DNA from: Anaeramoeba ignava BMAN
Lineage: Eukaryota; Protista; Anaeramoebae
DNA: 57,615 bases
Reading direction: 5' to 3'
NCBI GenBank assembly: GCA_028826165.1
Contig: JAPDFW010000038.1
Location: 1 to 57,615, forward strand
Shown piece after piece: positions 19,895-53,224 of the stretch. The notes beneath the pieces are model-generated. The model saw only the letters and a program-made list of their open reading frames with translations. It was not told where the DNA came from and made no database searches. The position numbers were made by a program, and so were the translations under genes. Numbering within the stretch: position 1 is the stretch's first letter; every line of letters begins with the position of its first letter.

Positions 19895-21250
19895 ATATTT
19901 ATATTTATTTTTAAATCAATTTTAAATTAATTTAGATAATAAAATCCTTTTTATAAATTATATAAATAAATTATTTTACATTTTAATTTTAATTTTTATT
20001 ATTTAATTTTTTGATTAAATTTATATTAAAAATGTTTAAATTATTTTATTAATTATTTAATAAGTAAAATAAATAATAAAATTATATTTTATATTATTAA
20101 TTTATTTCAAATTAATTTATACTTTAAATTTAATTAAATATTATTATTTAAAATTATTTAAAATTATTTTATTTTTTTGGAAATAAAATTAATTAAATTT
20201 AATTTTTTTTGATTTAAATTTATATTTATTTTTAAATCAATTTTGAATTAATTTAGATAATAAAATCTTTTTATAAATTATATAAATAAATTATTTTATA
20301 TTTTAATTTTAATTTTAATTATTTAATTTTTGATTAAATTTATATTAAAAATGTTTAAATTATTTTATTAATTATTTTAATAAATTAAATAAAAATAATA
20401 AAAAATTATTTTATATTATTAATTTATTTCAAAATTAATTTAATAAATTTAATTAAATAAAATTTATTATTTTAAAATTATTTTATTTTTTTGGAAATAA
20501 AATTAATTAAATTTATTTTTGATTTAAATTTATATTTATTTTTAAATCGAATTAATTTAGATAATAAATTCTTTTTATAAATTATATAAATAAATTATTT
20601 TATATTTTAATTAACATTTTCTCTTTTATTTTTTTTTATAATTTTGTTTTTAAAATTTTTATTTGATTTTTCTTTTTATTTTCTTTTTATTTTTAATTTA
20701 GAAAAACAAAAATGAAAAATGAATAAAAGTTTTTTAATTAAAAAATTTTAAATTTTTAAATTTTTTATTAATTTTAAATAAAATTATTTTAAAAAATTTT
20801 TAAAATCAATTTTGATTTAATTTAATAATAAAAATAAAAATCTTTAAATTTTTTATAAATAATTTATTTAAATTAAATTTTATTTTATTTATTTTTTAAT
20901 AATAAATTCTTTTTAAAATCATTTCTTAATTAAATAAAATTTTATTTAATTTTGTTTTCTTATTTCTTTTTTATTTTTTTAATTTAGAAATCATTTCTTA
21001 ATTAATTTTATTGCGAAATAGTAAATTAATTATTATTAAAAATTAAATAATAAATTCTTTTTAAAATCATTTCTTAATTAATTTTATTGCAAAATAATAA
21101 ATAAATTATAATTAAAATTTAAAAATTTAAATAATTTTTTTTTTAAATTTATTTCTTTATTTTTAATTTTAATTTAATATTAATAATAAATTCTTTTTAA
21201 AATCATTTCTTAATTAATTTTATTGCAAAATAATAAATAAATTATAATTA
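19895..21250. repeat. AT-rich tandem duplications (~310-320 bp unit x3, then ~140 bp unit x3)
   Basis: TTATATTTATTTTTAAATC...AATTAATTTAGATAATAAA recurs at ~19900, ~20220 and ~20530. AATAAATTCTTTTTAAAATCATTTCTTAATTAA recurs at ~20900, ~21048 and ~21185. Confidence 0.7.
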
Positions 21251-22001
21251 AAAATTAATTTGAATTGAATATTTTTTTAGTGTTTGGTGTTTCCTTTCAT
21301 TTTCTAAAGGTAATTTTTATATTTATATTTATATTTATAAATATTCTTTGAAAAGAAAAAAAAATGAAAAAATGAAAAATGAAAAATGAATTTGGAAATT
21401 TAAAAATAAAAATTATTAAAAAACAAAAACAAAAACAAAAACAAAAAACAAAAAATGAATTAGAAATAAATTATTGATTTATTTTATTTTATTATTTATT
21501 AATCAATTAATGATATTTTCCAAAATCAAAATCAAAATTTATTTATTATTTAAAAATAAAAACAAAATAAATAAAGTAATTTAAAATGATAAATAATTTA
21601 GAATAATAGATAAATCTAATTTAATCTAATTTAATTTAATTTAATTGAAAAAAGAAATTCCATTAATTAATTTTGATAAATTATAATTATAAATAATGAT
21701 AGATATTAATAAATATAAATTTAGATTTTTTTTGGAATTATTTTTATTTTGGAAATGGAGATGAATAAAATAAAATAAAATAAAATAAAATAAACATTTT
21801 ATCTAATATAAATATAAATATAAAAATAAAATAGAATAAATATTAATTATAAATAGAATAAAATTAATTAATTAATTAATTTATTTTTGGAAATTAAAAT
21901 AAACTTACAAATAATAAATTAGTTAATAAAGTAATTTTTGGATTTAGATATTAAATTTACTTGAAATAAAATAATATATAAATATAAATATAAATATAAA
22001 T

Positions 22002-22174
22002 ATAAGAAAGGATCATATCGCGTACTTTGTCGTTTTTCGAGTAAATGCCCCAATGTCTTTCAACTTCACCTCCCCCAATGCACCGGCCTTCGGCCTCTCC
22101 GCTACGCTACGGCGGGGAGGCTCAGTTGACGACTTGGGGCTTTACACGAAGACGACAAATGTCGCGTTTCTTAT
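22002..22174. other. GC-rich imperfect palindrome (rod with branched tip), copy 1
   Basis: Nested complementary arms ATAAGAAA/TTTCTTAT, CGCG/CGCG, TTTGTCGT/ACGACAAA, TTCG/CGAA, GTAAA/TTTAC, GCCCCAA/TTGGGGC, GTC/GAC, TCAACT/AGTTGA and CCTCCCC/GGGGAGG. The tip contains GGCC-TTC-GGCC and CCGC-TACGCTACG-GCGG. Confidence 0.85.
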
Positions 22175-22294
22175 TTATTTCTTTTCATTATTGTTCTTAT
22201 ATTGTTCAATTTTGATTAGAATTATTAATTATTAAATTGATTTTAAATTGATTTAATTTGGATTGATTAATAATTAATAATTAGAAATAAATAA

Positions 22295-22390
22295 GGGCGT
22301 AGACTCGGGTGAGTATGTTAACACCAGCTTTTTCTTTGGGCGGGTGGCTAATTTCAAAGCTTAAAACATTGCCAAAGATGAACATCCCCC
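22295..22390. other. Second GC-rich, partly self-complementary block beside the hairpin, copy 1
   Basis: GGGCGTAGACTCGGGTGAGTATGTT...CTTTGGGC...GCCAAAG...AACATCCCCC. Identical copy at 39970-40065. Confidence 0.55.
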
Positions 22391-22874
22391 TTTTTTATTT
22401 TTTATTTTTTATTTTTATTTTTATTTTTATTTTTATTTTTATTTTTATTTTCAATAGATTTATTTATATATTATATATATAAAAAAAAAGAAAAATGAAA
22501 GAAGAAGAAAAAAATGAATTCCACTTTTAAAAAAAAAAATCCACAAAAACATTTTTCCATTTTTCATTTCAATTTTTTATTTAAATTTAGAATAATTTTA
22601 ATTAAGGAATTGTATCTAAATTTCAATTACTTTGAAAGTTTATATTTATATTTATTTTCATTTTCATTTTTTTTTGTTTATATTATTTATTTACTTCAAT
22701 CTTTTATTATTTATTTATTTATTTATTTATTAATTAATTAAAATCTAAAATAATTTTTAATTTATAAATAAATAAATAAATAATTAATTAATTAATTACA
22801 TTCAAAGTTTACATGATTTTTATTTTGATTTTGATTTTGATTTTGATTTTGATTTTGATTTTCAAAAATGTTCA

Positions 22875-23202
<328 letters not shown>

Positions 23203-23377
23203 AAAATCATTTCTTTTATTTATAAATTGAAAATATAAATATAAATATAAATATAAAATAAATATAAAAAAAATAAACATAAATTAAAAATCAAATCTTT
23301 AAAAATGAAAATAAATCAATTCAAAAATTTATTCAATAGTTTCTAAATCATTTTTAAAAGCCAAATAAATAAATATC

Positions 23378-24745
23378 AATCTGAAAATAAATCTAAAAAT
23401 AAATCTTAAAATAAATCTTAAAATAAATCTAAAAATAAATCTGAAAATAAATCTGAAAATAAATCTTAAAATAAATAACAAATAAATCTGAAAATCAATC
23501 TGAAAATAAATCTAAAAATCAATCTTAAAATAAATCTAAAAATAAATCTTAAAATAAATCTAAAAATAAATCTTAAAATAAATCTGAAAATAAATCTGAA
23601 AATAAATCTAAAAATAAATCTGAAAATCAATCTAAAAATAAATCTGAAAATAAATCTGAAAATAAATCTAAAAATAAATCTAAAAATAAATCTAAAAATA
23701 AATCTGAAAATAAATCTGAAAATAAATCTGAAAATAAATCTGAAAATAAATCTAAAAAATAAAATGAAAATAAATCTTTTGAAAAAATAAATCTGAAAAT
23801 AAATCTGAAAATAAATCTAAAAATAAATCTTAAAATCAATCTGAAAATAAATCTTAAAATAAATCTGAAAATAAATCTGAAAATAAATCTTAAAATCAAT
23901 CTGAAAATAAATCTGAAAATAAATCTGAAAATAAATCTGAAAATCAATCTGAAAATAAATCTTAAAAATCAATCTGAAAATAAATCTGAAAATAAATCTG
24001 AAAATAAATCTGAAAATAAATCTGAAAATAAATCTTAAAAATCAATCTGAAAATAAATCTGAAAATAAATCTGAAAATAAATCTAAAAATAAATCTGAAA
24101 ATAAATCTGAAAATAAATCTGAAAATAAATCTGAAAATAAATCTGAAAATAAATCTGAAAATAAATCTGAAAATAAATCTAAAAATAAATCTGAAAATAA
24201 ATCTGAAAATAAATCTGAAAATAAATCTGAAAATAAAATCAAAATAAATCTAAAAATAAATCTTAAAAATCAATCTGAAAATAAATCTTAAAATAAATCT
24301 TAAAATCAATCTGAAAATAAATCTTAAAATAAATCTGAAAATAAATCTGAAAATAAATCTGAAAATAAATCTGAAAATAAATCTGAAAATAAATCTGAAA
24401 ATAAATCTGAAAATAAATCTGAAAATAAATCTGAAAATAAATCTAAAAATAAAAAAAAAATAAATCTGAAAAATAAATGAAAAAATCAAAAATCGAAATA
24501 AATCTTAAAATCAATCTGAAAATAAATCTAAAAATAAATCTTAAAATAAATCTGAAAATAAATCTGAAAATCAATCTGAAAATCAATCTGAAAATAAATC
24601 TGAAAATAAATCTTAAAAATCAATCTGAAAATCAATCTGAAAATAAATCTGAAAATAAATCTGAAAATAAATCTGAAAATAAATCTTAAAATAAATCTTA
24701 AAATAAATCTGAAAATCAATCTGAAAATCAATCTGAAAATCAATC
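23378..24745. repeat. 12-bp minisatellite (AAAATAAATCTG, variants ..TCAATC.. and ..CTT/CTA)
   Basis: About 110 units. The same array sits at the homologous module position at ~35045, ~40860, ~49725 and ~55843. Confidence 0.95.
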
Positions 24746-25937
24746 AATTTATTTTTCGTTATTTTTGTTTTAAATTATTAACAACAACAACAACAAGAAC
24801 AATAACAACAATAAGAAATTTCCTTCAATAAATGTAAATTAAAATTAAAATTAAAAATTAAAAATTTAGAATTAATATTAATAAATTTATTTTGTTAATG
24901 AATAGTTTTTTTGTTTTGATTATTGATATTGAAAGAAAAATTGATTTTAATTATTATTATTATTAATATTAATATTGATTATTTTTTGATTTTTTGATTT
25001 TTGATTACATTTTAAATAATTAAAAAGATTTTGTTAATTATTTTTGAATCTTATATTAATTAATTTAGAATCAATTAATTAATTAATTAATTATAAATTC
25101 TTTTCATTTTTGATTTTTGATTTTTGATTTTTGATTTTATAAAGATTACATTAATTAAAATGTTTTTGAAAGTGAATTTATTTTTTTGTTTTTTGTTTTT
25201 AAAAAATAAAAGCACTAATCAAAATTTTCAATTTAAAACCTATTTAACCTAATAAAAATAATAAATAAAATAAATATAAAATTAATAATAGAAATAAAAT
25301 AATTAATTTAAATTTATTATTTAATTATTTATAATTGAAATAAAAATAATAAAAATATTAAATTAAATAATTAATAATAAAAATTAATAATAAAATATAA
25401 TTTTATAATTTGAAATAAATATAAAATTAATAATAGAAATAAAATAATTAATTTAAATTTATTATTTAATTATTTATAATTGAAATAAAAATAAAATTAA
25501 ATTTTTAAATTTTTAAATAAATAAATAAATAAATTTACTTTTGAATTGAATTGAATTGAATTGAATTGAATTGGATTGGATTGAATATTTTATTAGTTTT
25601 TGAGATTTCCTTTCATTTTGTGAAGGTAATTTTTATTTTTATTTTTATTTATTTTTATATTTATTCTTCTAAGAAAAAAAAAATGAAAAAAATGAAAAAT
25701 GAAAATTGAAAAATGAAAAAATGAAAATTAGAAATAATTTATTAATTAATTAATTAATGATATTTTCCAAATCAAAAATCCATTTATTTATAAATAAAAA
25801 TATAAATAAAAATAATTTGGAATAAATTAATAAATGAATAATAATAAATAAATAAATAAATAAATAATCAGATAAATTGAATCTAATCTAATCTAATCTA
25901 ATCTAAATGAAGTGAAAAAGAAGTTTCATTAATTCAA

Positions 25938-25998
<61 letters not shown>

Positions 25999-27531
25999 AA
26001 TTAATTAAATAATTAATTAATTTTGGTAAATTGTGGATTATAAATAATGATTTTTTTTTGGAAGAATTGAAAATGAATAAAATAAACATTTTATCTAATA
26101 TAAAAATAAAAATATAAGTAAAATTAATTAATTAATTTATAAATTTATAAATTTTGTGAATTAAAATAAAATTACAAGTAAATTAGTTAATAAAGTAGTT
26201 TTGGATTTAGATATTAAATTGTCTTGAAATAAAAAGTTTTCAAAATAAATAAAAATAATTAATTAAATAATTAATAATAAAAATAAATAATAAAATATAA
26301 TTTTATAATTTAAATTAAATATAAAATTAATAATAGAAATAAAATCAATAATTTAAATTTATTAATAATAAAAATAAATAATAAAATATAATTTTATAAT
26401 TTAAATTAAATATAAAATTAAGAATAGAAATAAAATCAATAATTTAAATTTATTAATAATAAAAATAAATAATAAATAATAAAATAATAAATATTTTAAA
26501 ATGAATACAGACATTTTAAGGAATTCCAAAAACTTATAAAAAAATTAATAATCAATTATTTTTTTATTTTTTATTTTTATTTTTATGGAATATTTTGAAT
26601 CAATAAAAAAAGAAAAGAAAAGAAAAAGAAAAATTGGATTTTTAATTTATTTATTTTAGATAAAAATATTAAAAGAAATGAAACAAACAAAACAAAACAA
26701 ATTTGATGATTTTTTTTTGTTTCTAAATAAAACATATAAAAATAATATCAATTTGATTTTGTTTTTATATTTATATTTAGATTTTATTTTCAGAACAAAT
26801 TATCAATAGATTTTGAATTTTGAATTTGATTTAAATTTTGATTTAATTTTGAATTTAAATTTTGATTTAAATTTGAATTGAATTTGATTTAAATTTTGAT
26901 TTAAATTTTGATTTAAATTTTGATTTAAATTTTGAATTTAATTTTGAATTTTGAATTTGAATTTGAATTTGATTTAAATTTTGATTTAAATTTTGATTTA
27001 AATTTTGATTTAAATTTTGATTTAAATTTTGATTTAAATTTGATTTAAATTTTGATTTAAATTTTGATTTAAATTTTGATTTAAATTTTGATTTAAATTT
27101 TGATTTAAATTTGGATTTAAATTTGGATTTAAATTTTGGAAATGAAAAAAAAATGAAATGAATTAGAAATAAATTATTGATTGATTATTGATTAATTGAT
27201 TGATATTTTCCAAATCAAAATTTATTTATAAAAATAAAATAATTTAAAATAATAAATAAATAAATAATAAATAATAATCAGATAAATTGAATCTAAATGA
27301 AGTGAAAAAGAAATTTAATTAATTAATTACCTTTGATAAATTATAAATATAAATAATGATATAAATAAGTATAAATTTAGATTTTTGAAATTATTGATTT
27401 TTTATTTTTGAATTTAAATTTATAAATTATTTTGTTATAAATTTGTTTATAATATATATAAATAAATTGATTTTTTTTATTTTTAATTTAAATTATAAAT
27501 AAATTGAAAATTAAATTTATATATTTTATAT

Positions 27532-30500
27532 GAGAGATTCGAGGGATTCTGTAATCCCTTTTATCTCGACCCCTCTTCCCGCAAAGGTAAAACAAAAAAA
27601 TTCCTCTTTTTTTTTTAACAGAAAACTTAACAGAAAACTTATTTTTTTTTGGCTTTTTGATAAATGCTTTGTTTTTGAATTTTATACAAATTTGAGGGAA
27701 CAATGAAAAGGTTCCCTAGAAATATAAATAAAAAAAAAATAAATTTCTTAATAAATTTTTTGATTTTGATTTTATTTTAAACAAAAATTGGGATCTAAAA
27801 TTGATCCAAAAAAAGTAAGCTTTTGAATTTCCAAGTTTTCAAATCAAAAAATTTGTGGGTGATCCTTTGTGGATTATTAATGGAAAAAAAGAAATAAATG
27901 CAAAATGTGATGACTTTTGGGAAATGTGACTCTAGTATCCAAAAAGAATTTGAACAAAATTATTTGGCGAAGATTTCAGACTATCACAGTTTTTGATTCA
28001 GCCCAGTTTTGGATCTCTTGTTTTGATCTAAAAAAGATCCGATTAATTCAATCTAAAGAAAATATCTTTTCTAAAACAAATCTCAATTACCCAATTAACT
28101 AATAGATCAAACACTATTTTGGTTGACTTCCAAAATATTCAATTTTTTCATGAATCCATAAATCAAATCTGTTTTCGAAATGCTTTTGGGGAATTTTTTT
28201 CATCTCTTCTGTGAGAATAATCTAGTTTGAAAAGTGATTATTTGGATTAAAATCTCTTTAATTTAACATTCTTTGAAATCAAAAAATGGAAAGAATTTTC
28301 AATTTCCATAAAATTATTTTTAAAGATGAGTTCTTTTATTTCTATATTGATTTAATTCCTTTCAATTCCTTTTTTTTTGATCTTTGAAAAGCATTTAATT
28401 CCTTCCAGTTTAAGGATCTTTGCTTTCTTCAGTTTATGTTCGATCAATTTCATGCAAGATAATAAAAAGTTTACTTCATTAGAAAAGTCAATTCTTTCAT
28501 TAATTTTGGGATTCCAAATCCAAAAATTGCAAACTATTACAAAAGATTTGTAGATAATCTATACAAGAAATCACTATAAAATCAAGTATTATTGAGAAAT
28601 TTTGAGCTAATTCCAAGATATCGAGTGAAAAATTGATCGTGGAGAATTTTTAGGTTTGAATTTGGTGGGAATTGTGAAGAAATACAAAGTGAAATGTGAA
28701 AGACAAAAGATACAGAGATAGACTCTAAATTCTCAAAATCATAAGAAAAAAAAGGTGATGTAAGGTGACGTTTTTTGAAGTATAAAAGCAAAAAAATTAA
28801 TTTTTTTGGATCATCTTTCTTAGGAAAATTCTTTTTTTTTTTCAAACTTTTTTTTTCAAACTTTTTTTTCAAACTTTTTTTTCAAACTTTTTTTTTCAAA
28901 CTTTGACAAAAATAAAATCAAAATCAAAATCTAATGTTTTGTATTATTCGATCGGAAGATTTACAATTTATTATTGATTTATCTGAAATCAAATCAATGG
29001 AAGGACTGAAGAAAGAAATTTATGACAATTTCAAATTGAATAAAGATCAAGATGAATTAGAAATTTATTTTAAAAAAGCAATGGAGAAATGCGAATACAC
29101 AGAAGATCGTACTAATCGGGCTCAAAATGAAAATGAAAATGATGAAAAAAAGATGTGGTCCAAATATGTTATAAATTCAGATCTTACGCTTGATACACTC
29201 AGATCACTTTTAAAAAAATCGAACAAGATGATTTATCAGGAGGAAGGTAAGTGTATAATTTTTATCAACAATATCAAAAAAGAAAAACATCTCATTCTAT
29301 CACCTAAATTAAAGAATGAAATTCGAAAACACAAATTTTTTGAGATCAATAAAAATGAGAAAGGAGTTTTTTGTGAAATTTGTGAATTACAAATTCACCC
29401 AAACAGTTGCGACAAAATCGATCGACATGTTACCTCAAAAAGACATAAGAGGAATTATTCCCTTATGTGTGTTAAAAATGATAAGAAAATGCAATCTCTC
29501 ATAGGGAAGAATTTAACAGAGAAAATTAAACGAATTTACAATCTTTTCACCACAGTTTGTTCATCTGATTTTTTTTCAATTAAGAATCATGTATTGTTTC
29601 GGACAGGATTGACTAAAGAGAGATTGTGGAATATTTTAACTGAAGATGGACTCGATTTGAGAATTCCATACAAAGAATTTTGTCATATCACAAAACATTT
29701 TTTTTGTTTCAAAGCAGGAGAGTCATTATTTTTTCACTGTCCTTTGTGTTCAGGACCCAATGCGAAAAAGCACCGCATGAGAGTTGAGAGTATGAAGAAG
29801 TTATATAACACTAAAATTGAGGATCCCAACACACTTGTTGTGATTCTTGATTTTAGTGTGAATATACAGGAGAGAAGAGATAAATGGGAAACTCCTGAGT
29901 TTTACACATCTAAATCATGGATTCTTTTGAATGCTACTTTGATGCTTGATAAGATCCAATATTTGGACTTCATTACTAATGATAATCATAAAGTAATCAT
30001 TATCATAGATCTTTTCAAATTTCTTTAAGATAAACTAATTTTTTCTTTTCTTTAATTTTTTTTTTAAAAATTACTAAAATAGGATCAACAAATGGTTTAC
30101 TTCATATTGGGCAAGCTGCAAGAAAGTATTATGGAAAAGATTAAAAATCAAGAAATTGGACAAAAGGAAAAAATATGCTTCTTCTCTGATGGTGGGAATC
30201 ATTTGCACAATAATGTTGTGATTTCAAGAATAATTAATCTATTCTATCCACACTTCAAGGATATAGAGATATTTTTTTTTGAAGCTTACCATGGAAAGAG
30301 TGCCTGTGATCGGCACTTTGGACTCATTTCACGGCAGAAGAAATCTTTTGGGGATATTCTTTCACTTAAAGATTTGGATATATTTTTATCTGGTTTGAAC
30401 AATACTTCTTGTTTCCCGATGGAAATTGATCGCTCTAAATTGATTACTGTTGATTTTAAGATCAAAGATTTCAAAAAATACCATTGTTGGCACTTCGAAA

Positions 30501-32160
30501 ATGGGAAGCTATTCGGAAGAGAAACTTCTTATTCGGATCCAGTAGAGATCAAGATTCCCTCAATTCTATTTCAAACGAGGAAGTTCATTTGGGATCTAAC
30601 TGACAACAAAGATCAAATTCTTCATAATTCGCAACAAAATGTTCCATTAGAAGGAGATAATTTCAATTCTATTAATTCTTTATCTAAAACTCAAGAACCT
30701 AAATCCACATTGCGAAGAACCAAAAACAAGAGAAAAAAAGGAAATCTCAAGAGGTCAGAAGAGAAAAAAATCTTGAAATCCAAAACTTCAAATCCAAAGA
30801 ATCAAGTCACTGATGAAGTTAGTCAACTTAAAGGATTTCAGAATATTGGAAACACTTGCTTTCTTTCATCTGTATTTCAATGCTTACTTAGAACACAGTT
30901 TTCTCAAATTCAATCTATTGGATCTTTATCACAAAGCATATTCAACCTTTTTTCACAAACAAGCTTGCTTTTCGACCCAACTCAATTTTTTGATGTTTTC
31001 CACAAACTTTCTCCAACTTTTCATTTGGGAAATCAAGAAGATGCCCACTTGTTTTTGACACAATTATTTTTTCAATTAAACCAAGAAATCAAAAGATTGA
31101 GTAAAGAAATGATGGAATCTAAAACAAATTGCAATCAAGAAAGTATCTCAAATGAGAATGAAAATTTACAAAGAAATGTCAGGGTAAATCAATTAATTCT
31201 CGGACAGTTTGTATCACAAATTCAAACCACCATCAAATGTTCCCAATGTAAAGGAATCAAGGAGAACATTGAGCCATTTTTGACAATTGTACTTCCATTG
31301 ACTCAATGCCGACATCAAGTAAATCTCACTTATTTGATTGATTCCTATTTTTCAAAATCAAGATTAAAAAAACAAGATCAAGTTTTCTGTTCCTCTTGTG
31401 ATGAAAAAAGAAATTCAGATCTCCAACGAAAGATCATCACTTTGCCTCGTTATCTGATTTTTTTTATTCAAAGAATCAAATTCAATCCCCAAACCAAGAA
31501 GGCTCGAAAGAGTCATAAAATGGTTGAATTTCCAGAAATTCTTAATCTCCAACATCTTATTTCCCCTGAGTTGAATCTCGAGAATGGGACATTCAATTTG
31601 CTAGGGTTAGTCCATCATTTTGGGACGCCCAATAGTGGGCATTATTATTCGGTGTGTCGCGAATTTTCACCTCTTCTTTCAGCTTATCAGTGGTTTTTAT
31701 TTGATGACGACGAAGTAACTGAGGCTTATTTTCCTCTTCAACCTTCTTCTTCGGTGGTTCTTTTATTTTATGAAAGAAGACATGAAAAAGTTTAACCATT
31801 TCAATTCTTTTTCAATCAATTTTTTTTTAATCAATTCTTTTTCAATCAATTCTTTTCAATCAATTTTTTAATCAATTTTTTCAATCAATTCTTTTTCAAT
31901 CAACTTTTTTTTAATCAATTTTTTTCAATCAACTTTTTTTTTCAATCAATTCTTTGAAGTTTTGGCATCAAAAAAGTTAATAAAAATCCAGAAAAATCAA
32001 TCAAAACATTTTTATTAAAAAAAAAATTTATTCTTTTTTCTAAAAACGCGGGTAAATGAGGAAACCCCGGGTTTTCAATATCAAAAAAATCAAAAAATAA
32101 AAGGAAAATAATTAAAACAAATTAATAAAAAATCCCTTAAATCCTCACCCCGATTCTCTC
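27532..32160 (+). mobile_element. Complete Sola2-like DDD DNA transposon (4629 bp)
   Basis: The left end is ATAT|GAGAGATTCGAGGG and the right end is CCCCGATTCTCTC|ATAT, giving a short imperfect TIR with GAG...CTC termini. Removing the element and one ATAT restores the satellite consensus TTTTATATATAGAGAGAAA. GRG/CYC termini and 4-bp TSDs are established Sola features. Internal GC is higher than in the flanks. Confidence 0.88.
28934..31795 (+). CDS. Sola2-like transposase fused to a C-terminal ubiquitin-specific protease (USP/peptidase C19); join(28934..29992,30083..31795), 923 aa
   Basis: A 90-nt phase-0 intron 29993-30082 (GTAATC...TTACTAAAATAG) joins the two track ORFs in frame (TNDNHK|DQQMVY). 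Motifs: C2H2-type CEIC...HVTSKRH, CPLC...H, and a DDD core LDFSVN / FFSDGGNH / FEAYHGKSACDRHFG. The USP domain from ~30833 has Cys box GFQNIGNTCFLSSVFQCL, QEDAHLFL, two CxxC (CSQC, CSSC), His box HFGTPNSGHYYS, and WFLFDDDEV. Confidence 0.9.
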
Positions 32161-34123
32161 ATATATAGAGAGAAATCGATTTTTTATTTTTTGAATATAA
32201 ATTATAAATAAATTGGGAATTAAATTAATAAATTATTTTATTATAAATTTGTTTATAATATATATAAATAAATTGATTTTTTTTATTTTGAATTTAAATT
32301 AGAAATAAATTGAAAAATAAATTTATATATTTTATATATAGAGAGAAATTGATTTTTTATTTTTTGAATATAAATTATAAATAAATTGGGAATTAAATTA
32401 ATAAATTATTTTGTTATAAATTTGTTTATAATATATATAAATAAATTGATTTTTTTTATTTTTAATTTAAATTATAAATAAATTAAAAATTAAATTTATA
32501 TATTTTATATATAGAGAGAAATTGATTTTTTATTTTTTGAATATAAATTATAAATAAATTGGGAATTAAATTAATTATTATTTTTGTTATAAATTTGTTT
32601 TATAATATATATAAATAAATTGATTTTTTTTATTTTTAATTTGAATTATAAATAAATTGAAAATTAAATTTATATATTTTATATATAGAGAGAAATTGAT
32701 TTTTTATTTTTTGAATATAAATTATAAATAAATTGGGAATTAAATTAATAAATTATTTTGTTATAAATTTGTTTATAATATATATAAATAAATTGATTTT
32801 TTTATTTTTAATTTGAATTATAAATAAATTAAAAATTAAATTTATATATTTATATATAGAGAGAAATTGATTTTTATTTTTGAATATAAATTATAAATAA
32901 ATTGGGAATTAAATTGATAAATTATTTTATTATAAATTTGTTTTATAATATATATAAATAAATTGATTTTTTTTATTTTTAATTTTAAATTATAAATAAA
33001 TTGAAAAATAAATTTATATATTTTATATATAGAGAGAAATCGATTTTTTTTATTTTTTGAATATAAATTATAAATAAATTGGAAATTAAATTAATAAATT
33101 ATTTTGTTATAAATTTGTTTATAATATATATAAATAAATTGATTTTTTTTATTTTTAATTTAGATTAAATTAAATTAAAAATTAAATTTATATATTTTTA
33201 TATATAGAGAAATTGATTTTTATTTTTGAATATAAATTATAAATAAATTGGGAATTAAATTAATTAATTATTTTGTTATAAATATGTTTATAATATATAT
33301 AAATAAATTGATTTTTTTTATTTTTAATTTGAATTGTAAATAAATTGAAAAATAAATTTATATATTTATATAGAGAGAAATTGATTTTTATTTTTGAATA
33401 TAAATTATAAATAAATTGGGAATTAAATTAATTAATTATTTTGTTATAAATTTGTTTTATAATATATATAAATAAATTGATTTTTATTTTTAATTTTAAA
33501 TTATAAATAAATTAAAAATTAAATTTATATATTTTATATATAGAGAGAAATTGATTTTTATTTTTGAATATAAATTATAAATAAATTGAAAATTAAATTA
33601 ATTAATTATTTTGTTATAAATTTGTTTATAATATATATAAATAAATTGATATTTTTATTTTATTTTTAATTTAAATTATAAATTAAAATTAAAAATAAAT
33701 TTATATTTTTTATATAGAGAGAGAAATTGATTTTTATTTTTGAATATAAATTATAAATAAATTGGAAATTAAATTTATTAAGTATTTTATTATAAATTTG
33801 TTTATAATATATATAAATAAATTGATTTTTTTTATTTTTAATTTAAATTATAAATAAATTGAAAAATAAATTTATATATTTTATATATAGAGAGAAATCG
33901 ATTTTTTATTTTTTGAATATAAATTATAAATAAATTGGAAATTAAATTAATTAATTATTTTATTATAAATTTGTTTATAATATATACAGTCGTTTTCGAT
34001 TGACTGAGGATGAAATAATGTAAATTTATACAAAAAAATTTTTAAAAAATTAATAAAAAAATAACAAAAAAAAAATGAAAAAAAAATCATAAAAAATTTT
34101 TTTCATTTTTTTTTCCATTTCAA

Positions 34124-34680
34124 TTTTTTATCCAAATCTAGAATAATTTTTAGTTAAGAAATTGCAACCAAACGTTACTTAGTCTTCAACTTGATATTAT
34201 TTTCATTTTTTTTTTTTCATTTTAATTTTTTATCCAAATCTAGAATAATTTTCAGTTAAGAAATTGCAACCAAACGTTAGTTAGTCTTCAATTTGATATT
34301 ATTTTCATTTTGTCAATTTTTTTTTACATTATTTTTTACATTATTTTTTACAAATTTTTTTCATTTTTTTTTCATTTCAATTTTTTATCCAAATCTAGAA
34401 TAACTTTTAGTTAAGAGATTGCAACCAAACGTTACTCAGTCTTCAACTTGATATTATTTTCATTTTGTCAATTTTTTTTTACATTATTTATATCAATTTT
34501 TTATCCAAATCTAGAATAACTTTCAGTTAAGAGATTGCAGCCAAACGTTACTCAGTCTTCAACTTGATATTATTTTCATTTTTTTTTTTCATTTCAATTT
34601 TTTATCCAAATCTAGAATAACTTTCAGTTAAGAAATTGCAACCAAACGTTACTCAGTCTTCAACTTGATATTATTTTCAT
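34124..34680 (+). repeat. Five subterminal ~76-bp direct repeats with T-rich variable-length linkers
   Basis: ATCCAAATCTAGAATAAYTTTYAGTTAAGARATTGCAACCAAACGTTACTCAGTCTTCAACTTGATATTATTTTCA at 34130, 34232, 34387, 34503 and 34604. Confidence 0.93.
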
Positions 34681-35659
34681 TTTTTTTTTTCATTTTTTTT
34701 TTATTATTAAAATCTAAAATAATTTTTCATTCATAAATTATAAATAAATCGTAATTAATTATAATCAAACTTTACATTGTTTTGATTTTGATTTTGGTTT
34801 TTATTTTGATTTTTATTTCAAAAATGATAAATAAAAAAATCATTTCTTTTTATTTTATTTATTGAAAAATATAAATAGAAATATAAATATAAATATAAAT
34901 TATGTGTTATTTGTCTTCTTAAATGAAAATAAATCAATTCATTTGGTTTGTAAAGTATTCATTCAATAGTTTCTAAATCATTTTTAAAAAGCAAAATTAT
35001 CCAAATAAAGAGAGAAATAAATCAAATCAAAATAAATCAATCAATCTTAAAATAAATCTGAAAATAAATCTGAAAATAAATCTGAAAATAAATCTGAAAA
35101 TAAATCTGAAAATCAATCTGAAAATAAATCTAAAAATAAATCTGAAAATCAATCTGAAAATCAATCAATTTATTTTTCGTTATTTTTGTTTTAAATTATC
35201 AACAAGAACAAGAACAATAACAATAACAACAATAAGAAATTTCTTTCAATAAATGTAAATTATAACTAAAATTAAAAATTAAAAATTTAGAATTAATATT
35301 AATAAATTTATTTTGTTAATGAATAGTTTTTTTTGTTTTGATTATTGATATTGAAAGAAAAATTGATTTTAATATTATTATTATTAATATTAATATTGAT
35401 TATTTTTGATTTTTGATTACATTTTAAATAATTAAAAAGATTTTGTTAATTATTTTTGAATCTTATATTAATTAATTTAGAATCAATTAATTAATTAATT
35501 AATTAATTATAAATTCTTTTCATTTTTGATTTTTGATTTTTGATTTTATAAAGATTACATTAATTAAAATGTTTTTGAAAGTGAATTTTTTTTTGTTTTG
35601 TTTTTAAAAAATAAAAGCACTAATCAAAATTTTCAATTTAAAACCTATTTAACCTAATA

Positions 35660-38600
35660 AAAATAATAGAAATAAAATAATAAATTTAAATTTATTATTT
35701 TATTATTTATAATTGAAATAAAAATAATAAAAATATTAAATTAAATAATTAATAATAAATATAAATAATAAAATATAATTTTATAATTTAAAATAAATAT
35801 AAAATTAATAATAGAAATAAAATAATTAATTTAAATTTATTATTTAATTATTTATAATTGAAATAAAAATATTTAATTAAATAATTAATAATAAAATAAA
35901 TAATAAAATATAATTTTTATAATTTTAAATTAAATATAAAATTAATAATAGAAATAAAATAATTAATTTAAATTTATTATTTAATTATTTATAATTGAAA
36001 TAAAAATAATAAAAATATTTAATTAAATAATTAATAATAAAAATAAATAATAAAAATAATTTTATAATTTAAAATAAATTTAAAATAAATTAATAATAGA
36101 AATAAAATATTTAATTTAAATTTATTATTTAATTATTTATAATTGAAATAAAAATAATAAAAATATTTAATTAAATAATTAATAATAAAAATAAATAATA
36201 AAATATAATTTTATAATTTGAAATAAATATAAAATTAATAATAGAAATAAAATAATTAATTTAAATTTATTATTTAATTATTTATAATTGAAATAAAAAT
36301 AATAAAAATATTTAATTAAATAATTAATAATAAAAATAAATAATAAAAATAATTTTTATAATTTAAAATAAATATAAAATTAATAATAGAAATAAAATAT
36401 TTAATTTAAATTTATTATTTAATTATTTATAATTGAAATAAAAATAATAAAAATAATTAATTAAATAATTAATAATAAAAATAAATAATAAAAATAATTT
36501 TTATAATTTAAAATAAATATAAAATTAATAATAGAAATAAAATAATTAATTTAAATTTATTATTTAATTATTTATAATTGAAATAAAAAAATAAAAAAAT
36601 AATAAATTAAATAATTAATAATAAAAATAAATAATAAAAATAATTTTATAAATTTAAAAATAAATAAAAATAAATAATAGAAATAAAATAATTAATTTAA
36701 ATTTATTATTTAATTATTTATAATTGAAATAAAAATAATAAAAATATTTAATTAAATAATTAATAATAAAAATAAATAATAAAATATAATTTTATAATTT
36801 AAATTAAATATAAAATTAATAATAGAAATAAAATTAATAATTTAAATTTATTATTTAATTATTTATAATTGAAATAAAAATAAAATTAAATTTTTAAATT
36901 TTTAAATAAATAAATAAATTTACTTTTGAATTGAATTGAATTGAATTGGATTGGATTGAATATTTTATTCTCTTATGAGATTTCCTTTCATTTTATTGAT
37001 ATTATTTTTATTTTTATAATTATTCTTTGAGAAAAAAAAAATGAAAAAAATGAAAAATGAAAATTAGAAAATAAATTAATTATTAATTTATTAATGATAT
37101 TTTCCAAATCAAAATTTATTTCCTAAAACAAAATAATAAAAAACAAAAATAATTAATAATAAAAAAATAAATAAATAAATAAATAAATAAAATGAATAAA
37201 TAAATAAATAATCAGATAAATTGAATCTAATCTAAATGAAGTGAAAAAGAAGTTCCATTAATTCAATAATTAATTAAATAATTAATTAATTAATTTTGGT
37301 AAATTGTGGATTATTAAATAATGATTTTTGGAAGAATTGAAAGATGAATAAAATAAAGATTTTATCTAATATAAATAAATATAAATAAAATAATAAATTA
37401 ATAAAAATAAATTAATTTTATAAATTATTAAATTTTTGAATTAAAAAAATAAACTTAAATAGTAAATTAGTTAATAAAGTAGTTTTGGATTTAGATATTA
37501 AATTGACTTCTTTTTGAATTTTTGAAATAAAAATAATAAATTAAATAATTAATAAAAATAAAAATAAATAAAAAATATAATTTTATAATTTAAAATAAAT
37601 ATAAAATTAATAATAGAAATAAAATATTTAATTTAAATTTATTATTTAATTATTTATAATTGAAATAAAAATAATAAAAATAATTAATTAAATAAATAAT
37701 AATAAAAATAAATAATAAAATATAATTTTATAATTTAAATTAAATATAAAATTAATAATAAGAAATAAAATAATTAATTTAAATTTATTATTTAATTATT
37801 TATAATTGAAATAAAAATAATAAAAAATTTAATTAAATAAAATTAATAATAAAAATAAAAATAATAAAAATATAATTTTATAATTTAAAATAAATATAAA
37901 ATTAATAATAGAAATAAAATATTAATTTAAATTTATTATTAAATTTATTTATAATTGAAATAAAAATAATATAAAATATTTAATTAAATAATTAATAATA
38001 AAAATAAATAATAAAAATAATTTTATAATTTAAAATAAAAATAAATATAAAATAATAATAGAAATAAAATATTTAATTTAAATTTATTATTTAATTATTT
38101 ATAATTGAAAATAAAAATAATAAAAATAATTAATTAAATAATTAATAATAAAAATAAATAAAAAATATAATTTTATAATTTGAAATAAATATAAAATAAA
38201 TAATAATAGAAATAAAATATTTTAATTTAAATTTATTATTTAATTATTTATAATTGAAATAAAAATAATAAAAATATTTAATTAAATAATTAATAATAAT
38301 AAAAATAAATAATAAAATATAATTTTATAAATTTAAAATAAATATAAAATTAATAATAGAAATAAAATATTTAATTTAAATTTATTATTTAATTATTTAT
38401 AATTGAAAAATAAAAATAATAAAAATATTTAATTAAATAATTAATAAAAAAAAAAATAAAATAAAAATAATTTTATAATTTAAAAATAAATATAAAATTA
38501 ATAATAGAAATAAAAATATTTAATTTAAATTTATTATTTAATTTATTTATAATTGAAATAAAAATAATAAAAATAATTAATTAAATAATTAATAATAAAA

Positions 38601-38860: not shown

Positions 38861-39676
38861 AATTAAATTTTTAAATTGTAAATAAATAAATAAATAAATT
38901 AATAATCTAAATTTACTTTTAAATTAATTTGAATTTGAATATTTTTAGTGTTTGGTATTTCCTTTCATTTTCTAAAGGTAATTTTTATATTTATATTTAT
39001 ATTTATAAATATTCTTTGAAAAGAAAAAAAAAATGAAAAATGAAAAATGAAAAATGAATTTGGAAATTTAAAAATAAAAATTATTAAAAAACAAAAACAA
39101 AAACAAAAACAAAAACAAAAATGAATTAGAAATAAATTATTGATTTATTTTATTTTATTATTTATTAATCAATTAATGATATTTTCCAAAATCAAAATCA
39201 AAATTTATTTAAAATTTAAAAATAAAAAAATAAAAAAAAATAAATAAAAAATAATTTAAAATGATAAATAATTTAGAATAATAGATAAATCTAATTTAAT
39301 CTAATCTAATTTAATTGAAAAAAGAAATTCCATTAATTAATTTTGATAAATTATAATTATAAATAATGATAGATATTAATAAATATAAATTTAGATTTTT
39401 GGAATTATTTTTATTTTGGAAATGAAGATGAATAAAATAAAATAAAATAAAATAAAATAAAATAAACATTTTATCTAATATAAATATAAATATAAAAATA
39501 AAATAGAATAAATATTAATTATAAATAGAATAAAATTAATTAATTTTTTATTTTTGGAAATTAAAATAAACTTACAAATAATAAATTAGTTAATAAAGTA
39601 ATTTTTGGATTTAGATATTAAATTTACTTGAAATAAAAATATATAAATATATAAATATAAATATATAAATATAAAT

Positions 39677-39849
39677 ATAAGAAAGGATCATATCGCGTAC
39701 TTTGTCGTTTTTCGAGTAAATGCCCCAATGTCTTTCAACTTCACCTCCCCCAATGCACCGGCCTTCGGCCTCTCCGCTACGCTACGGCGGGGAGGCTCAG
39801 TTGACGACTTGGGGCTTTACACGAAGACGACAAATGTCGCGTTTCTTAT
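39677..39849. other. GC-rich imperfect palindrome, copy 2
   Basis: Identical by eye to 22002-22174 (offset 17675). Confidence 0.85.
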
Positions 39850-39969
39850 TTATTTCTTTTCATTATTGTTCTTATATTGTTCAATTTTGATTAGAATTAT
39901 TAATTATTAAATTGATTTTAAATTGATTTAATTTGGATTGATTAATAATTAATAATTAGAAATAAATAA

Positions 39970-40065
39970 GGGCGTAGACTCGGGTGAGTATGTTAACACC
40001 AGCTTTTTCTTTGGGCGGGTGGCTAATTTCAAAGCTTAAAACATTGCCAAAGATGAACATCCCCC
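39970..40065. other. Second GC-rich block, copy 2
   Basis: Identical by eye to 22295-22390. Confidence 0.55.
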
Positions 40066-40859
40066 TTTTTTATTTTTATTTTTATTTTTATTTTTATTTT
40101 TATTTTTATTTTTATTTTTATTTTTATTTTTATTTTTATTTTTATTTTTATTTTCAAATTTTCAATAGATTTATTTATATATTATATATATATAAAAAGA
40201 AAAATGAAAGAAGAAGAAAAAAATGAATTCCACTTTTTAAAAAAAAAAATCCACAAAAACATTTTTTTTTCCATTTTTTCTTTTCAATTTTTTTTATTTA
40301 AATTTAGAATAATTTTAATTAAGGAATTGTATCTAAATTTCAATTACTTTGAAAGTTTATATTTATATTTATTTTCATTTTCATTTTTTTTTGTTTATAT
40401 TATTTATTTACTTCAATCTTTTATTATTTATTTATTTATTTATTAATTAATTAAAATCTAAAATAATTTTTAATTTATAAATAAATAAATAAATAATAAA
40501 TAAATTAATTAATTACATTCAAAGTTTACATGATTTTTATTTTGATTTTGATTTTGATTTTGATTTTGATTTTGATTTTGATTTTGATTTCAAAAATGTT
40601 AAATAAATAAATAAATAAATAAAAAATCATTTCTTTTTATTTTATTTATTGAAAATATAAATATAAATATAAATATAAATATAAATATAAATATAAATAT
40701 AAATATAAATATAAATATAAATATAAATATAAATATAAATATAAATATAAATTATGTGTTATTTGTCTTCTTAAATGAAAATAAATCAATTCATTTGGTT
40801 TGTAAATTATTTATTCAATAGTTTCTAAATCATTTTTAAAAGCCAAATAAATAAATATC

Positions 40860-41690
40860 AATCTGAAAATAAATCTAAAAATAAATCTAAAAATAAATCT
40901 GAAAATAAATCTGAAAATAAATCTGAAAATAAATCTGAAAATAAATCTGAAAATAAATCTTAAAATAAATCTTAAAATCAATCTGAAAATAAATCTGAAA
41001 ATAAATCTGAAAATAAAATCTGGTAATAAATCTGATAAAATAAATCTGAAAATAAATCAAAAATAAAAGGAAAAATAAATCTGAAAATAAATCTGAAAAT
41101 CAATCAAAAATAAATTAAAAAAATAAATCTGAAAATAAATCTGAAAATAAATCTTAAAATAAATCTGAAAATAAATCTGAAAATAAATCTTAAAATAAAT
41201 CTTAAAATAAATCTGAAAATAAATCTTAAAATAAATCTGAAAATAAATCTGAAAATCAATCTGAAAATAAATCTGAAAATAAATCTAAAAATAAATCTGA
41301 AAATAAATCTGAAAATAAATCTGAAAATAAATCTGAAAATAAATCTGAAAATAAATCTGAAAATAAATCTGAAAATAAATCTGAAAATAAATCTGAAAAT
41401 AAATCTGAAAATAAATCTGAAAATAAATCTGAAAATAAATCTGAAAATAAATCTGAAAATAAATCTTAAAATAAATCTGAAAATAAATCTGAAAATAAAT
41501 CTAAAAATCAAATAAATCTGAAAATAAATCTAAAAATAAATCTGAAAATAAATCTGAAAATAAATCTGAAAATAAATCTGAAAATAAATCTGAAAATAAA
41601 TCTGAAAATAAATCTGAAAATAAATCTGAAAATAAATCTGAAAATAAATCTGAAAATAAATCTGAAAATAAATCTGAAAATAAATCTGAA
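40860..41690. repeat. 12-bp minisatellite (AAAATAAATCTG)n
   Basis: Directly visible. Source of the FRFI/DLFS ORFs. Confidence 0.95.
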
Positions 41691-44600
41691 AAAAAAAATT
41701 GAAAATCAATCAATTTATTTTTCGTTATTTTTGTTTTAAATTATCAACAACAACAACAAGAACAATAACAACAATAAGAAATTTCCTTCAATAAATGTAA
41801 ATTAAAATTAAAATTAAAAATTAAAAATTTAGAATTAATATTAATAAATTTATTTTGTTAATGAATAGTTTTTTTTGTTTTGATTATTGATATTGAAAGA
41901 AAAATTGATTTTAATATTATTAATATTAATATTGATTATTTTTTGATTTTTTGATTTTTGATTACATTTTAAATAATTAAAAAGATTTTGTTAATTATTT
42001 TTGAATCTTATATTAATTAATTTAGAATCAATTAATTAATTAATTATAAATTCTTTTCATTTTTGATTTTTGATTTTTGATTTTTGATTTTTGATTTTAT
42101 AAAGATTACATTAATTAAAATGTTTTTGAAAGTGAATTTTTGTTTTTGTTTTTAAAAAATAAAAGCACTAATCAAAATTTTCAATTTAAAACCTATTTAA
42201 CCTAATAAAAATAATAAAAAATAAATAATAAAATTAAATAATAGAAATAAAATAATTAATTTAAATTTATTATTTAATTATTTATAATTGAAATAAAAAT
42301 AATAAAAATATTTAATTAAATAATAATAAAAATAAATAATAAAATATAATTTTATAATTTAAAATAAATATAAAATTAATAATAGAAATAAAATAATTAA
42401 TTTAAATTTATTATTTAATTATTTATAATTGAAATAAAAATAAAATTAAATTTTTAAATTTTTAAATAAATAAATAAATAAATTTACTTTTGAATTGAAT
42501 TGAATTGAATTGAATTGAATTGGATTGGATTGGATTGGATTGAATATTTTATTAGTTTTTGAGATTTCCTTTCATTTTGTGAAGGTAATTTTTATTTTTA
42601 TTTTATTTTTATTTTTATATTTATTCTTCTAAGAAAAAAAAAATGAAAAATGAAAAATGAAATGAAAAATGAAAAATGAAAATTAGAAATAATTTATTTA
42701 TTAATTAATTAATGATATTTTCCAAATCAAAAATCCATTTATTTATAAATAAAAATATAAATAAAAATAATTTGGAATAAATTAATAAATGAATAATAAT
42801 AAATAAATAAATAAATAATCAGATAAATTGAATCTAATCTAATCTAATCTAATCTAAATGAAGTGAAAAAGAAGTTTCATTAATTCAATAAATAAATAAA
42901 TAATTAATTAATTTTGGTAAATTGTGGATTATAAATAATGATTTTTTTTTTGGAAGAATTGAAAATGAATAAAATAAAGATTTTATCTAATATAAATATA
43001 AGTAAAATTAATTAATTAATTTATAAATTTATAAATTTTGTGAATTAAAATAAACTTACAAGTAAATTAGTTAATAAAGTAGTTTTGGATTTAGATATTA
43101 AATTGTCTTGAAATAAAAAGTTTTCAAAATAAATAAAAATAATTAATTAAATAATTAATAATAAAAATAAATAATAAAATATAATTTTATAATTTAAAAT
43201 AAATATAAAATTAATAATAGAAATAAAATAAATAATTTAAATTTATTAATAATAAAAATAAATAATAAAATATAATTTTATAATTTAAAATTAAATATAA
43301 AATTAAGAATAGAAATAAAATCAATAAATAAAATTAATATTTTTATAAATAATAATAATAAATAATAAAAAAAATAATAAAATGATAAATATTTTAAAAT
43401 GAATACAGACATTTTAAGGAATTCCAAAAACTTATAAAAAAATTAATAATCAATTTTTTATTTTTTATTTTATTTTTATGGAATATTTTGAATCAATAAA
43501 AAAAGAAAAGAAAAGAAAAAGAAAAATTGGATTTTTAATTTATTTATTTTAGATAAAAATATTAAAAGAAATGAAACAAACAAAACAAAACAAATTTGAT
43601 GATTTTTTTTTGTTTCTAAATAAAACATATAAAAATAATATCAATTTGATTTTTTATATTTATATTTAGATTTTATTTTCAGAACAAATTATCAATAGAT
43701 TTTGAATTTTGAATTTGATTTAAATTTTGAATTTAAATTTTGATTTAAATTTGATTTAAATTTTGATTTAAATTTGATTTAAATTTTGATTTAAATTTTG
43801 GAAATGAAAAAAAAATGAAATGAATTAGAAATAAATTATTGATTGATTATTAATTAATTGATTGATATTTTCCAAATCAAAATTTATTAATAAAAATAAA
43901 AATAAAATAATTTAAAATAATAAATAAATAAATAATAGATAATAATCAGATAAATTGAATCTAAATGAAGTGAAAAAGAAATTTAATTAATTACCTTTGA
44001 TAAATTATAAATATAAATAAATATAAATTTAGATTTTTGAAATTATTGATTTTTTATTTTTATTTTTATTTTAGGAAATTGGAGATGAATAAAATAAAAT
44101 AAAATAAAATAAAGATTTTATCTAATAGAAATAAATAGAATAAATTAAATAAATTAATTCAGAATTTGAAAATAAATAAATTTAAAAGTAAATTAATTAA
44201 TAAAGTAATTACAGATTTAGATATTAAATTGATTTAAAATAAATAAAAAGAAGAAGAGTTTTATTTGGGAATATTTTGGTTTGTATTTTTATATTTTGGA
44301 GTTTGAATTTTTTAAACAAAAATAAATTTAATATAAATTTAATATTAATTTTTTTGTATTGATTTAATTTTGTATTATTTTATTCCAAATTTATAATAAA
44401 TTTTTGAATTTTTAATATTTTTTTGGAATAAAATTAATATTAATTTTACATTATTTTTACATCATTAATCATAAATTTTATCCTCACTTACAATAAAATG
44501 TCTGTATAAATATATAAATAAATTGATTTTTTTTATTTTTAATTTAAATTTGTTAATAAAATAAAATAAATAAATTTTTATTTTTAATAAAAATAAATAA

Positions 44601-48616: not shown

Positions 48617-48798
48617 TAAATTAAAAATTAAATTTATAAATTTTATATACAGTCGTTTTCGATTGACTGAGGATGAAATAATGTAAATTTATACAAAAAA
48701 ATTTTTAAAAAATTAATAAAAAAATAACAAAAAAAAAATGAAAAAAAAATCATAAAAAATTTTTTTCATTTTTTTTTTCATTTTTTTTTCCATTTCAA

Positions 48799-49354
48799 TT
48801 TTTTATCCAAATCTAGAATAATTTTTAGTTAAGAAATTGCAACCAAACGTTACTCAGTCTTCAACTTGATATTATTTTCATTTTTTTTTTTCATTTCAAT
48901 TTTTTATCCAAATCTAGAATAATTTTCAGTTAAGAAATTGCAACCAAACGTTACTCAGTCTTCAACTTGATATTATTTTCATTTTTGTCAATTTTTTTTT
49001 ACATTATTTTTTACATTATTTTTTACAAATTTTTTTCATTTTTTTTTCATTTCAATTTTTTATCCAAATCTAGAATAACTTTTAGTTAAGAAATTGCAAC
49101 CAAACGTTACTCAGTCTTCAACTTGATATTATTTTCATTTTGTCAATTTTTTTTTACATTATTTATATCAATTTTTTATCCAAATCTAGAATAACTTTCA
49201 GTTAAGAGATTGCAACCAAACGTTACTCAGTCTTCAACTTGATATTATTTTCATTTTTTTTTTTCATTTCAATTTTTTATCCAAATCTAGAATAGCTTTC
49301 AGTTAAGAAATTGCAACCAAACGTTAGTTAGTCTTCAACTTGATATTATTTTCA
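48799..49354 (+). repeat. Five subterminal ~76-bp direct repeats (copy D)
   Basis: Units at 48805, 48906, 49062, 49178 and 49279, with the same linker pattern as in copy B. Confidence 0.93.
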
Positions 49355-51935: not shown

Positions 51936-53102
51936 ATGGACACAAAGAAAATTTTCAATTTTCAGTTAAACAAAACAGGCAATGTGTATTTTCCTGGGTA
52001 TTCCTATGAACCAAGGGTTGTAATTCAAGTATTATTATTACTGAGCGAAAACTTAATTTGTGAAATTTTCAAAGACAAATCTCATCTCACATTTGCACAA
52101 ATGGAAGAAATTTTGTGCGTAGGGCATTCATATATTCATAAACTTAATCAAAAATTTGTAAAAAATGTAGCAGCCTTGTTTTCGGAAAAAGTAGAGATGA
52201 TGGTTGAAGAGGATTTTCATTATATTTTTGTAGAAGCGATAATCAAAACAACAGAAGAGATCATAAAAAATTCACATAAAACTTCCAATTCGAAAAAGAA
52301 ATTAACATTGACACATGAAGAATTTATCAAAAATGAAATCAAGAAACAACCCTCAATATATATTCGAGAAATTCAATCGAAATTAAATGAGGAATTTAGC
52401 TTAGATATTTCGATTTCTAGTTTATATAAATATATCACGAATCAATTAAAATATTCCAAAAAGAAGCTATCTTTGAGATCTCCGAGAAAGTTTACAGAAG
52501 AAAACAAGCATTTCCATGCCAAATTCAAGGAATATATGAAAGAAATATTTGATCTATTTGGAGACAACAATGTTATTTTTATTGATGAAGTTGGTGTGAA
52601 TTTAGATTCTTCGTATCGAAAAACTGGATGGGGACCAAAAAACGAAGAAATTTTATCGCCTTTTATTGCAAAAGATGAGAAACATCGGATAAATTCAATA
52701 TGTGCACTGTCTAATAATGGATTTGTTTGTATGGATTCATATCAAGATTCAATTAATGGAGTTAAATTTGCACAATTTATGATCGAAGTTTTGCTTCCAC
52801 TTCTATCAGAATCGTCTGCAGTAGTCATGGATAATTGCTCTATCCATCATTCTGTGGATAATCTTGTCAAAGGATATTATCAGGAATTCAATCACTTAAT
52901 TATTTACCTTCCACCATATTCCCCAGAACTCAACCCAATCGAAATGGGATTTGGTTGGCTAAAGCGTACTTTAGCAAGTTATCGAAAAGAATTTCTTGAA
53001 AATCCTTTCCAAACATGGCAAGATCTTGTTCAGAAATTTAATTCCACGCAAGATGCTCAATGCTATTTTGAAAAAGATTATGAATTTTTGAAGCAAAAAT
53101 AA
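51936..53102 (+). CDS. IS630/Tc1-mariner superfamily transposase (DD36E), 388 aa
   Basis: Intact ORF. HTH-like PSIYIREIQSKLNEEFSLDISISSLYKYI. Catalytic motifs IFIDEVG, VVMDNCSIHH and YLPPYSPELNPIE, with 36 residues between the second D and the E. Confidence 0.95.
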   Translation: MDTKKIFNFQLNKTGNVYFPGYSYEPRVVIQVLLLLSENLICEIFKDKSHLTFAQMEEILCVGHSYIHKLNQKFVKNVAALFSEKVEMMVEEDFHYIFVEAIIKTTEEIIKNSHKTSNSKKKLTLTHEEFIKNEIKKQPSIYIREIQSKLNEEFSLDISISSLYKYITNQLKYSKKKLSLRSPRKFTEENKHFHAKFKEYMKEIFDLFGDNNVIFIDEVGVNLDSSYRKTGWGPKNEEILSPFIAKDEKHRINSICALSNNGFVCMDSYQDSINGVKFAQFMIEVLLPLLSESSAVVMDNCSIHHSVDNLVKGYYQEFNHLIIYLPPYSPELNPIEMGFGWLKRTLASYRKEFLENPFQTWQDLVQKFNSTQDAQCYFEKDYEFLKQK

Positions 53103-53224
53103 ATGAAAGATATATTTCATTTTGTTTTCATTTTTTTTGTTTTTTCATTTTTTTTGTTTTCATTTTTTTTGTTTTCATTTTTTTGTTTTCATTTTTTTGT
53201 GTTTTCATTTTTTTTTGCTTTAAC

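Follow-up and report, generated by a model that had tools for sequence, protein, structure and literature searches.

A Sola2-like DNA transposon of Anaeramoeba ignava with a transposase fused to a USP-type domain

The element, its borders and its spliced gene

The stretch of DNA analysed here (the window) comprises 57,615 nucleotides of contig JAPDFW010000038.1 of Anaeramoeba ignava BMAN (contig C40 in our searches) and carries, at 27532-32160, a 4,629-bp element that starts with GAG, ends with CTC and encodes a single protein in which a transposase with a catalytic core of three Asp residues (DDD) is joined to a USP (peptidase C19) domain. It is best explained as an autonomous DNA transposon of the cut-and-paste kind, from a Sola2-like lineage with ATAT as its target. 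Its terminal inverted repeats (TIRs) are imperfect, with 11 of 13 positions matching, and lie at 27532-27544 on the forward strand, beginning GAG, and at 32148-32160 on the reverse strand, finishing CTC; the first 13 bases of the left end are those of the left end of a sister family (family C, below). ATAT flanks the element at 27528-27531 and 32161-32164, and the right-hand copy also forms the first bases of a host array of 173-bp tandem units (32161-33986, 10.6 copies), whose first unit the element interrupts. Comparison with the empty, uninterrupted units showed that the target-site duplication (TSD) is exactly 4 bp, confirming the clean ATAT TSD and GAG...CTC ends reported by an earlier reading of the window made from its sequence only.

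We refer to the window's family as family A and to the sister lineages as families B to E. The gene model was searched and folded exon by exon. The gene lies on the forward strand and has two exons encoding 923 aa in total, 353 codons in exon 1 and 570 codons plus the stop in exon 2. Exon 1 (28934-29992) supplies the N-terminal region, a BED-like C2H2 zinc finger (C147-H171, 29372-29446) conserved in families A-D, a CxxC...H motif and the first catalytic Asp (D306 in the motif DFSVN, 29849-29851), which is invariant in the alignment and nearly so in 60 homologues. It is followed by a predicted 90-nt GT-AG intron of phase 0 (29993-30082), which if retained would bring in an in-frame stop. Exon 2 (30083-31795) encodes the C-terminal half of the RNase H-type core (30083-30577) with the second and third catalytic Asp (nt 30188 in FSDGG and nt 30308 in HGKSACD), a polar, basic linker of about 78 aa (30578-30811, 24% Lys+Arg) and the USP domain, which runs through the stop codon (30812-31795). 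A low-complexity 15-bp tandem repeat (31801-31955) lies in the 3' part of the element.

The NCBI model KAJ5079105.1 (A. ignava, named only 'ubiquitin carboxyl-terminal hydrolase') has the identical intron, and this intron keeps one position and phase in families A-D, bearing out the single spliced 923-aa open reading frame proposed earlier. We rejected the 973-aa length of the NCBI model as a gene-prediction extension, since its extra 51-aa tail lies outside the element; these spurious-looking residues come from a splice past the right end into a tandem repeat of ~102 bp at 34411-34670. The sequence-only reading had also placed the DDD core and the USP domain in one exon. This is correct for the second and third Asp and the USP, which share one open frame in exon 2, and the fusion is therefore independent of the splice model; the first Asp (nt 29849) is in exon 1, so the complete active site does depend on the splice. 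Judged by its sequence, the zinc finger, whose family B counterpart matches zf-BED (E 2.5e-4), likely binds the element ends, and the basic linker is a possible nuclear localisation signal.

Transposase class, ATAT targeting and sister families

A profile of the exon 2 core matched 246 proteins among 1.84 billion representatives, and 60 of these share the motifs CxxC...H, DF, [FW]SDGG.HFKN and NFF..YHGKS.CD.HFG. The RNase H fold that had been expected for the transposase was seen, weakly, through a confident model of an intronless homologue, which gave weak matches to RNase H, UvrC, Mos1, integrases and Argonautes (E 3e-3 and above).

Sola2 ends follow 5'-GRG...CYC-3', and the element combines GAG...CTC ends and short TIRs with a 4-bp AT-rich TSD and, by eye, the Sola2 motif pattern. 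We accordingly use the name Sola2-like for a class assigned from motifs compared by eye and from the ends. The profile search returned no named Sola protein, and Pfam is without a Sola model (PMC5751038). Compared by eye and unscored, the core pattern fits Sola2-1_HM better than the Sola1 or Sola3 cores (cores from the supplement of PMC3985635), with the same order of DDD motifs: DF..N, an acidic residue, an ISDD..HD-like motif, [FW]SDG..[QH].KN and FF...HG. Protist Sola2 elements have 4-bp AT-rich TSDs, TIRs of 12-21 bp and exchangeable 3' cargo (PMC3627910), and the 4-bp AT-rich TSD, the short TIRs and, for protist members, the extra 3' cargo are features that our element shares with Sola2-1_HM and with the amoebozoan DFa and PPa families (PMC3627910). 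It differs from protist Sola2 in that their cargo is a separate Fanzor gene whereas here a USP is fused in frame (PMC3627910), and from Sola2 in general in its target, strictly ATAT here but AWWT there, and in having a highly divergent sequence. This strictly ATAT-targeting lineage looks like an undescribed branch of Sola.

Two other assignments were rejected. The Sola1 core motifs (DL.K.L..P, SDNCGGQN and GHT in Sola1-1_AP) are absent from our element, and the AWWT preference of Sola1 is compatible with it, not diagnostic. Sola3 has TTAA as its target, whereas ATAT was found in all copies here; Sola3 was reportedly described by Bao et al. in 2009 as having GAG...CTC termini and one fixed 4-bp target, both as in our element, but the Sola3-1_HM core (D[YW].QK, SDNA, no FF...HG) is a poorer fit than Sola2.

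ATAT was present at 12 of 12 insertions read, at the ends recovered (both ends in 11), and mostly within A-ATAT-T. Since ATAT makes up 9.5% of the AWWT 4-mers in the window, the chance of 12 in 12 is about 5e-13, and searches with left ends lacking the ATAT prefix led back to the same loci of families B and C. A complete metagenomic relative, L078 (Ga0209417_1038934, 30-2622), is 2.6 kb long and has an ATAT duplication, a 16-bp perfect TIR starting GAGTGA and an intronless transposase of about 560 aa, and it carries no USP; a second relative, L076, has a similar end. ATAT targeting is therefore shared more widely in the lineage, and the USP is an addition to it. Outside Anaeramoeba, a USP was found in 0 of 146 homologues, in none of 32 metagenome loci (most on short contigs) and in no viral contig.

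The earlier reading had suggested looking for other copies with the same ends and a 4-bp TSD. We searched the A. ignava assembly (42.8 Mb, 147 contigs) and found sister families that have kept the USP: four further diverged lineages have the transposase-USP layout, one of them (family E) with a truncated USP. The sister transposases are 32-37% identical in the core, which is followed by the USP domains. Family B has 6 copies of about 3.65-3.8 kb that are 96.6-99.6% identical, and family C has 5 copies of 3.4-3.5 kb that are 98.3-99.7% identical; in both, the copies sit at different loci and have sharp ends in common, and these families have been mobile. Family D (contig C26), which is present once, has a frameshifted USP, and in family E (contig C67) only a Cys box remains of the domain. 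In families B, C, D and E the USP stays in frame through a second intron, also of phase 0, that lies shortly upstream of the Cys box; family A is without it and the in-frame fusion there is direct. The NCBI models of families B and C are fused proteins too. Because five lineages share the layout and the intron position, we rejected an assembly or annotation artefact. Most copies lie inside AT-rich satellite or low-complexity DNA.

Contig C142 (102631-104592, reverse strand) holds another Sola-like relative of the transposase, in an open frame of 1,200 aa that seems to lack intron 1 and in which UCH gave no match. More left-end-like sites of the form ATAT-GAG(A/T)GATTC occur at C57:185179-185191 (reverse strand) and on C37, C71, C82 and C107; the C57 site precedes a decayed related transposase, and the other four may be further families or non-autonomous copies.

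Conservation and descent of the USP domain

The USP domain matches nearly the full Pfam UCH model, as had been anticipated (E 3.9e-38, 131.9 bits against a cut-off of 23.9, model positions 2-254 of 254), and the PDB sequences that it matches best are those of USP8, USP15 and USP2, with values between about 1e-23 and 1e-25. All of the motifs claimed by the sequence-only reading were found on the forward strand: the Cys box (Cys at nt 30857), QEDA (31034), both CxxC (31238 and 31388), the His box (31640) and the FDD Asp (31703). Aligned to USP8, the domain has the Cys-His-Asp/Asn triad, the oxyanion Asn and the zinc site of the fingers all in place; FDD varies at its first acidic position, which is occupied by Ser in family B and by Asn in family D. 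A single-sequence structure model had a predicted local distance difference test (pLDDT) score of 38 and was uninformative for the fingers-palm-thumb fold.

Across families A-D the USP domains are 22-40% identical, and 31 of 286 ungapped columns are invariant, among them the oxyanion Asn, the catalytic Cys and His, the FDD Asp and the four Cys of the zinc site. In family B, comparison of the copies gave 10 synonymous and 8 non-synonymous changes for the USP exon, a ratio of non-synonymous to synonymous polymorphism (pN/pS) of 0.20-0.31 (p 0.001-0.012 depending on transition bias), although these are small numbers and about half of the changes come from one divergent copy. Neutral evolution of the USP, which had been named as a possible refutation, is thus not what is seen in family B, and purifying selection on the domain is supported by these counts. 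Taken with the conserved active site, they indicate that the domain very probably works as a deubiquitinase and is retained because selection on the element favours it.

If instead the USP were a chance passenger, or the locus a domesticated host gene, the domain would be irrelevant to transposition. In favour of this, Fanzor is an example of 3' cargo that protist Sola2 elements exchange (PMC3627910), USP genes are numerous in A. ignava (140 matches), the window's family has one copy, and NCBI labels the proteins simply as ubiquitin hydrolases, an annotation of element proteins as host enzymes that inflates the A. ignava USP count. However, the active site is invariant down to 22-40% identity in elements that are still moving with ends and TSDs, whereas decay would be expected of a neutral passenger; the window copy itself, lying in a satellite, retains its two ends and is flanked by a perfect TSD. 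We regard this explanation as improbable.

As proposed earlier, we placed the element USPs in a tree with 18 host USPs (the host sample being 18-20 sequences, single-exon only), where they form the group A, (D,(B,C)) with support of 93/98. In the transposase tree the grouping is A, D, (B,C), with support of 92/85. Together these topologies are consistent with one USP capture followed by co-descent: an ancestor probably acquired a host USP at the transposase C-terminus in a single event, before the families split up within Anaeramoeba. No donor of the USP was found at E 1e-20.

Possible substrates and transposon precedents

The conserved, fused USP suggests that the element uses it against ubiquitin-based host control. 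In the mechanism that we rank first, the zinc finger would bind the element ends, the DDD core would cut and paste, and the basic linker would import the protein into the nucleus. The tethered USP would be an active deubiquitinase working in cis, stripping ubiquitin from a transposase or transpososome that would otherwise be sent to the proteasome or to Cdc48/p97 extraction, and the removal of ubiquitin would lengthen the working life of the transposase. We put the probability that the substrate is the transposase or transpososome itself at roughly 0.45.

Several observations weigh against this reading. No second copy or miniature inverted-repeat transposable element (MITE) of family A was found in the assembly, so the window's own family is single-copy. 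Family C gives a USP pN/pS of 0.7, which comes mostly from one decayed copy and is uninformative, and exon 1 of family B gives 1.47, a value inflated by frameshift artefacts. The tree groupings have moderate support and long branches and are unstable to the part of family D included, with family E unresolved. USP-less relatives have matching ends and ATAT, so the USP is dispensable for transposition chemistry. Finally, sequence alone cannot separate self from chromatin substrates.

The second of these substrate classes is tentatively ranked next. An active USP might act on its neighbours: by taking ubiquitin off histones or DNA-damage proteins where the element leaves or inserts, it might open up silent AT-rich chromatin or influence how the break left by excision is repaired. 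The same evidence of USP conservation would apply, Bao et al. suggested that the Ulp1/OTU domains of transposons take part in repair pathways (PMC2836005), and the histone-acting Ubp8, USP36 and USP46 are among the PDB matches, although they rank lower than the generic catalytic cores of USP8, USP15 and USP2 that head the list. The satellite and low-complexity surroundings of most copies are in keeping with a chromatin substrate, but this context may equally reflect ATAT density and the survival of harmless insertions, and no host donor was identified.

A further alternative is that the substrate of the USP is not host ubiquitin chains but a ubiquitin-like modifier, or the beta-grasp domain at the N-terminus of the transposase itself, cut in a form of self-processing or auto-regulation. 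The N-terminal ~100 aa (28934-29250) resemble PB1/ubiquitin-like beta-grasp domains in language-model features (0.76-0.83, scores within the chance range) and, weakly, the Crinkler N-terminal domain (E 0.01), and the element USPs are long-branched, so that their specificity may have shifted. A comparable N-terminal region is, however, present in the USP-less relatives, and no di-glycine cleavage motif was noticed after it. We consider this the least probable of the explanations, and action on the transposase or transpososome remains our preferred one.

Proteases that remove ubiquitin or SUMO recur in many transposon superfamilies. Ginger1, Mutator and Helitron carry OTU or Ulp1 domains (PMC2836005) and resemble our element in having such a protease, C-terminal or internal, on a transposon; they differ in that the folds are OTU, C48 and VTD, not C19, and the transposon superfamilies are others. 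The VTD domains of Helitrons are active deubiquitinases that prefer K48 and K63 chains, and they have been proposed to shield transposition proteins from the proteasome (PMC9741609). Closer to the present case, the Trichomonas vaginalis protein XP_001314237.1 has a transposase_11 domain (PF01609) and a Peptidase C19 domain (PMC2836005), and thus a DNA transposase and a USP-type domain in one protein of a related metamonad. There the transposase is of the IS4/IS5 type, and the available part of the source gives the protein a one-line mention without ends, copy survey or selection analysis. The sequence-only reading was aware of no described Sola-USP fusion. We found no report of one in the literature available, Repbase not being covered, and a literature search combining deubiquitinase, transposase and Trichomonas gave no match; given the T. 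vaginalis and Helitron precedents, transposon deubiquitinases and transposase-USP fusions both belong to kinds already known. What appears worth reporting is the Sola-USP lineage, its strict ATAT targeting and the apparently repeated capture of USP in one host.

This last point stems from contig C91, where matches to PF13359 (DDE_Tnp_4, PIF/Harbinger/IS5-type) and UCH fall in one 1,022-aa open frame (3417-5750, reverse strand); similar adjoining PF13359 and UCH pairs lie at C67:192325-195268 (reverse strand) and C134:51122-53699 (forward strand). These matches suggest a second, unrelated USP-bearing transposon superfamily in the A. ignava genome, which, with its USP in frame, is a hint that deubiquitination has been selected for more than once in A. 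ignava. A broader and more speculative possibility is that metamonads restrain DNA transposons by a ubiquitin pathway, and that Sola2-like and Harbinger/IS5-like elements in Anaeramoeba and IS4/IS5-type elements in Trichomonas captured USP independently as a tethered counter-defence; if so, the fusions would point to an undescribed ubiquitin-based anti-transposon system. The Sola2-like elements offer a compact test case, being 3.4-4.6 kb long and recently mobile, with a fixed target and a catalytic Cys open to inactivation, and the USP-less relatives provide natural controls.

Elsewhere in the window, a 388-aa Tc1/IS630-type transposase (DDE_3, E 9e-24) is encoded at 51936-53102 and is followed by a 204-aa open reading frame with no Pfam match (53183-53797). 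A GC-rich, self-complementary-looking stretch lies at ~22000-22175. Direct repeats of kilobase size with 88-94% identity pair 21227-25960 with 38896-42911 and 33966-36050 with 48629-50698, and the element therefore sits within a larger repeated, very AT-rich block.

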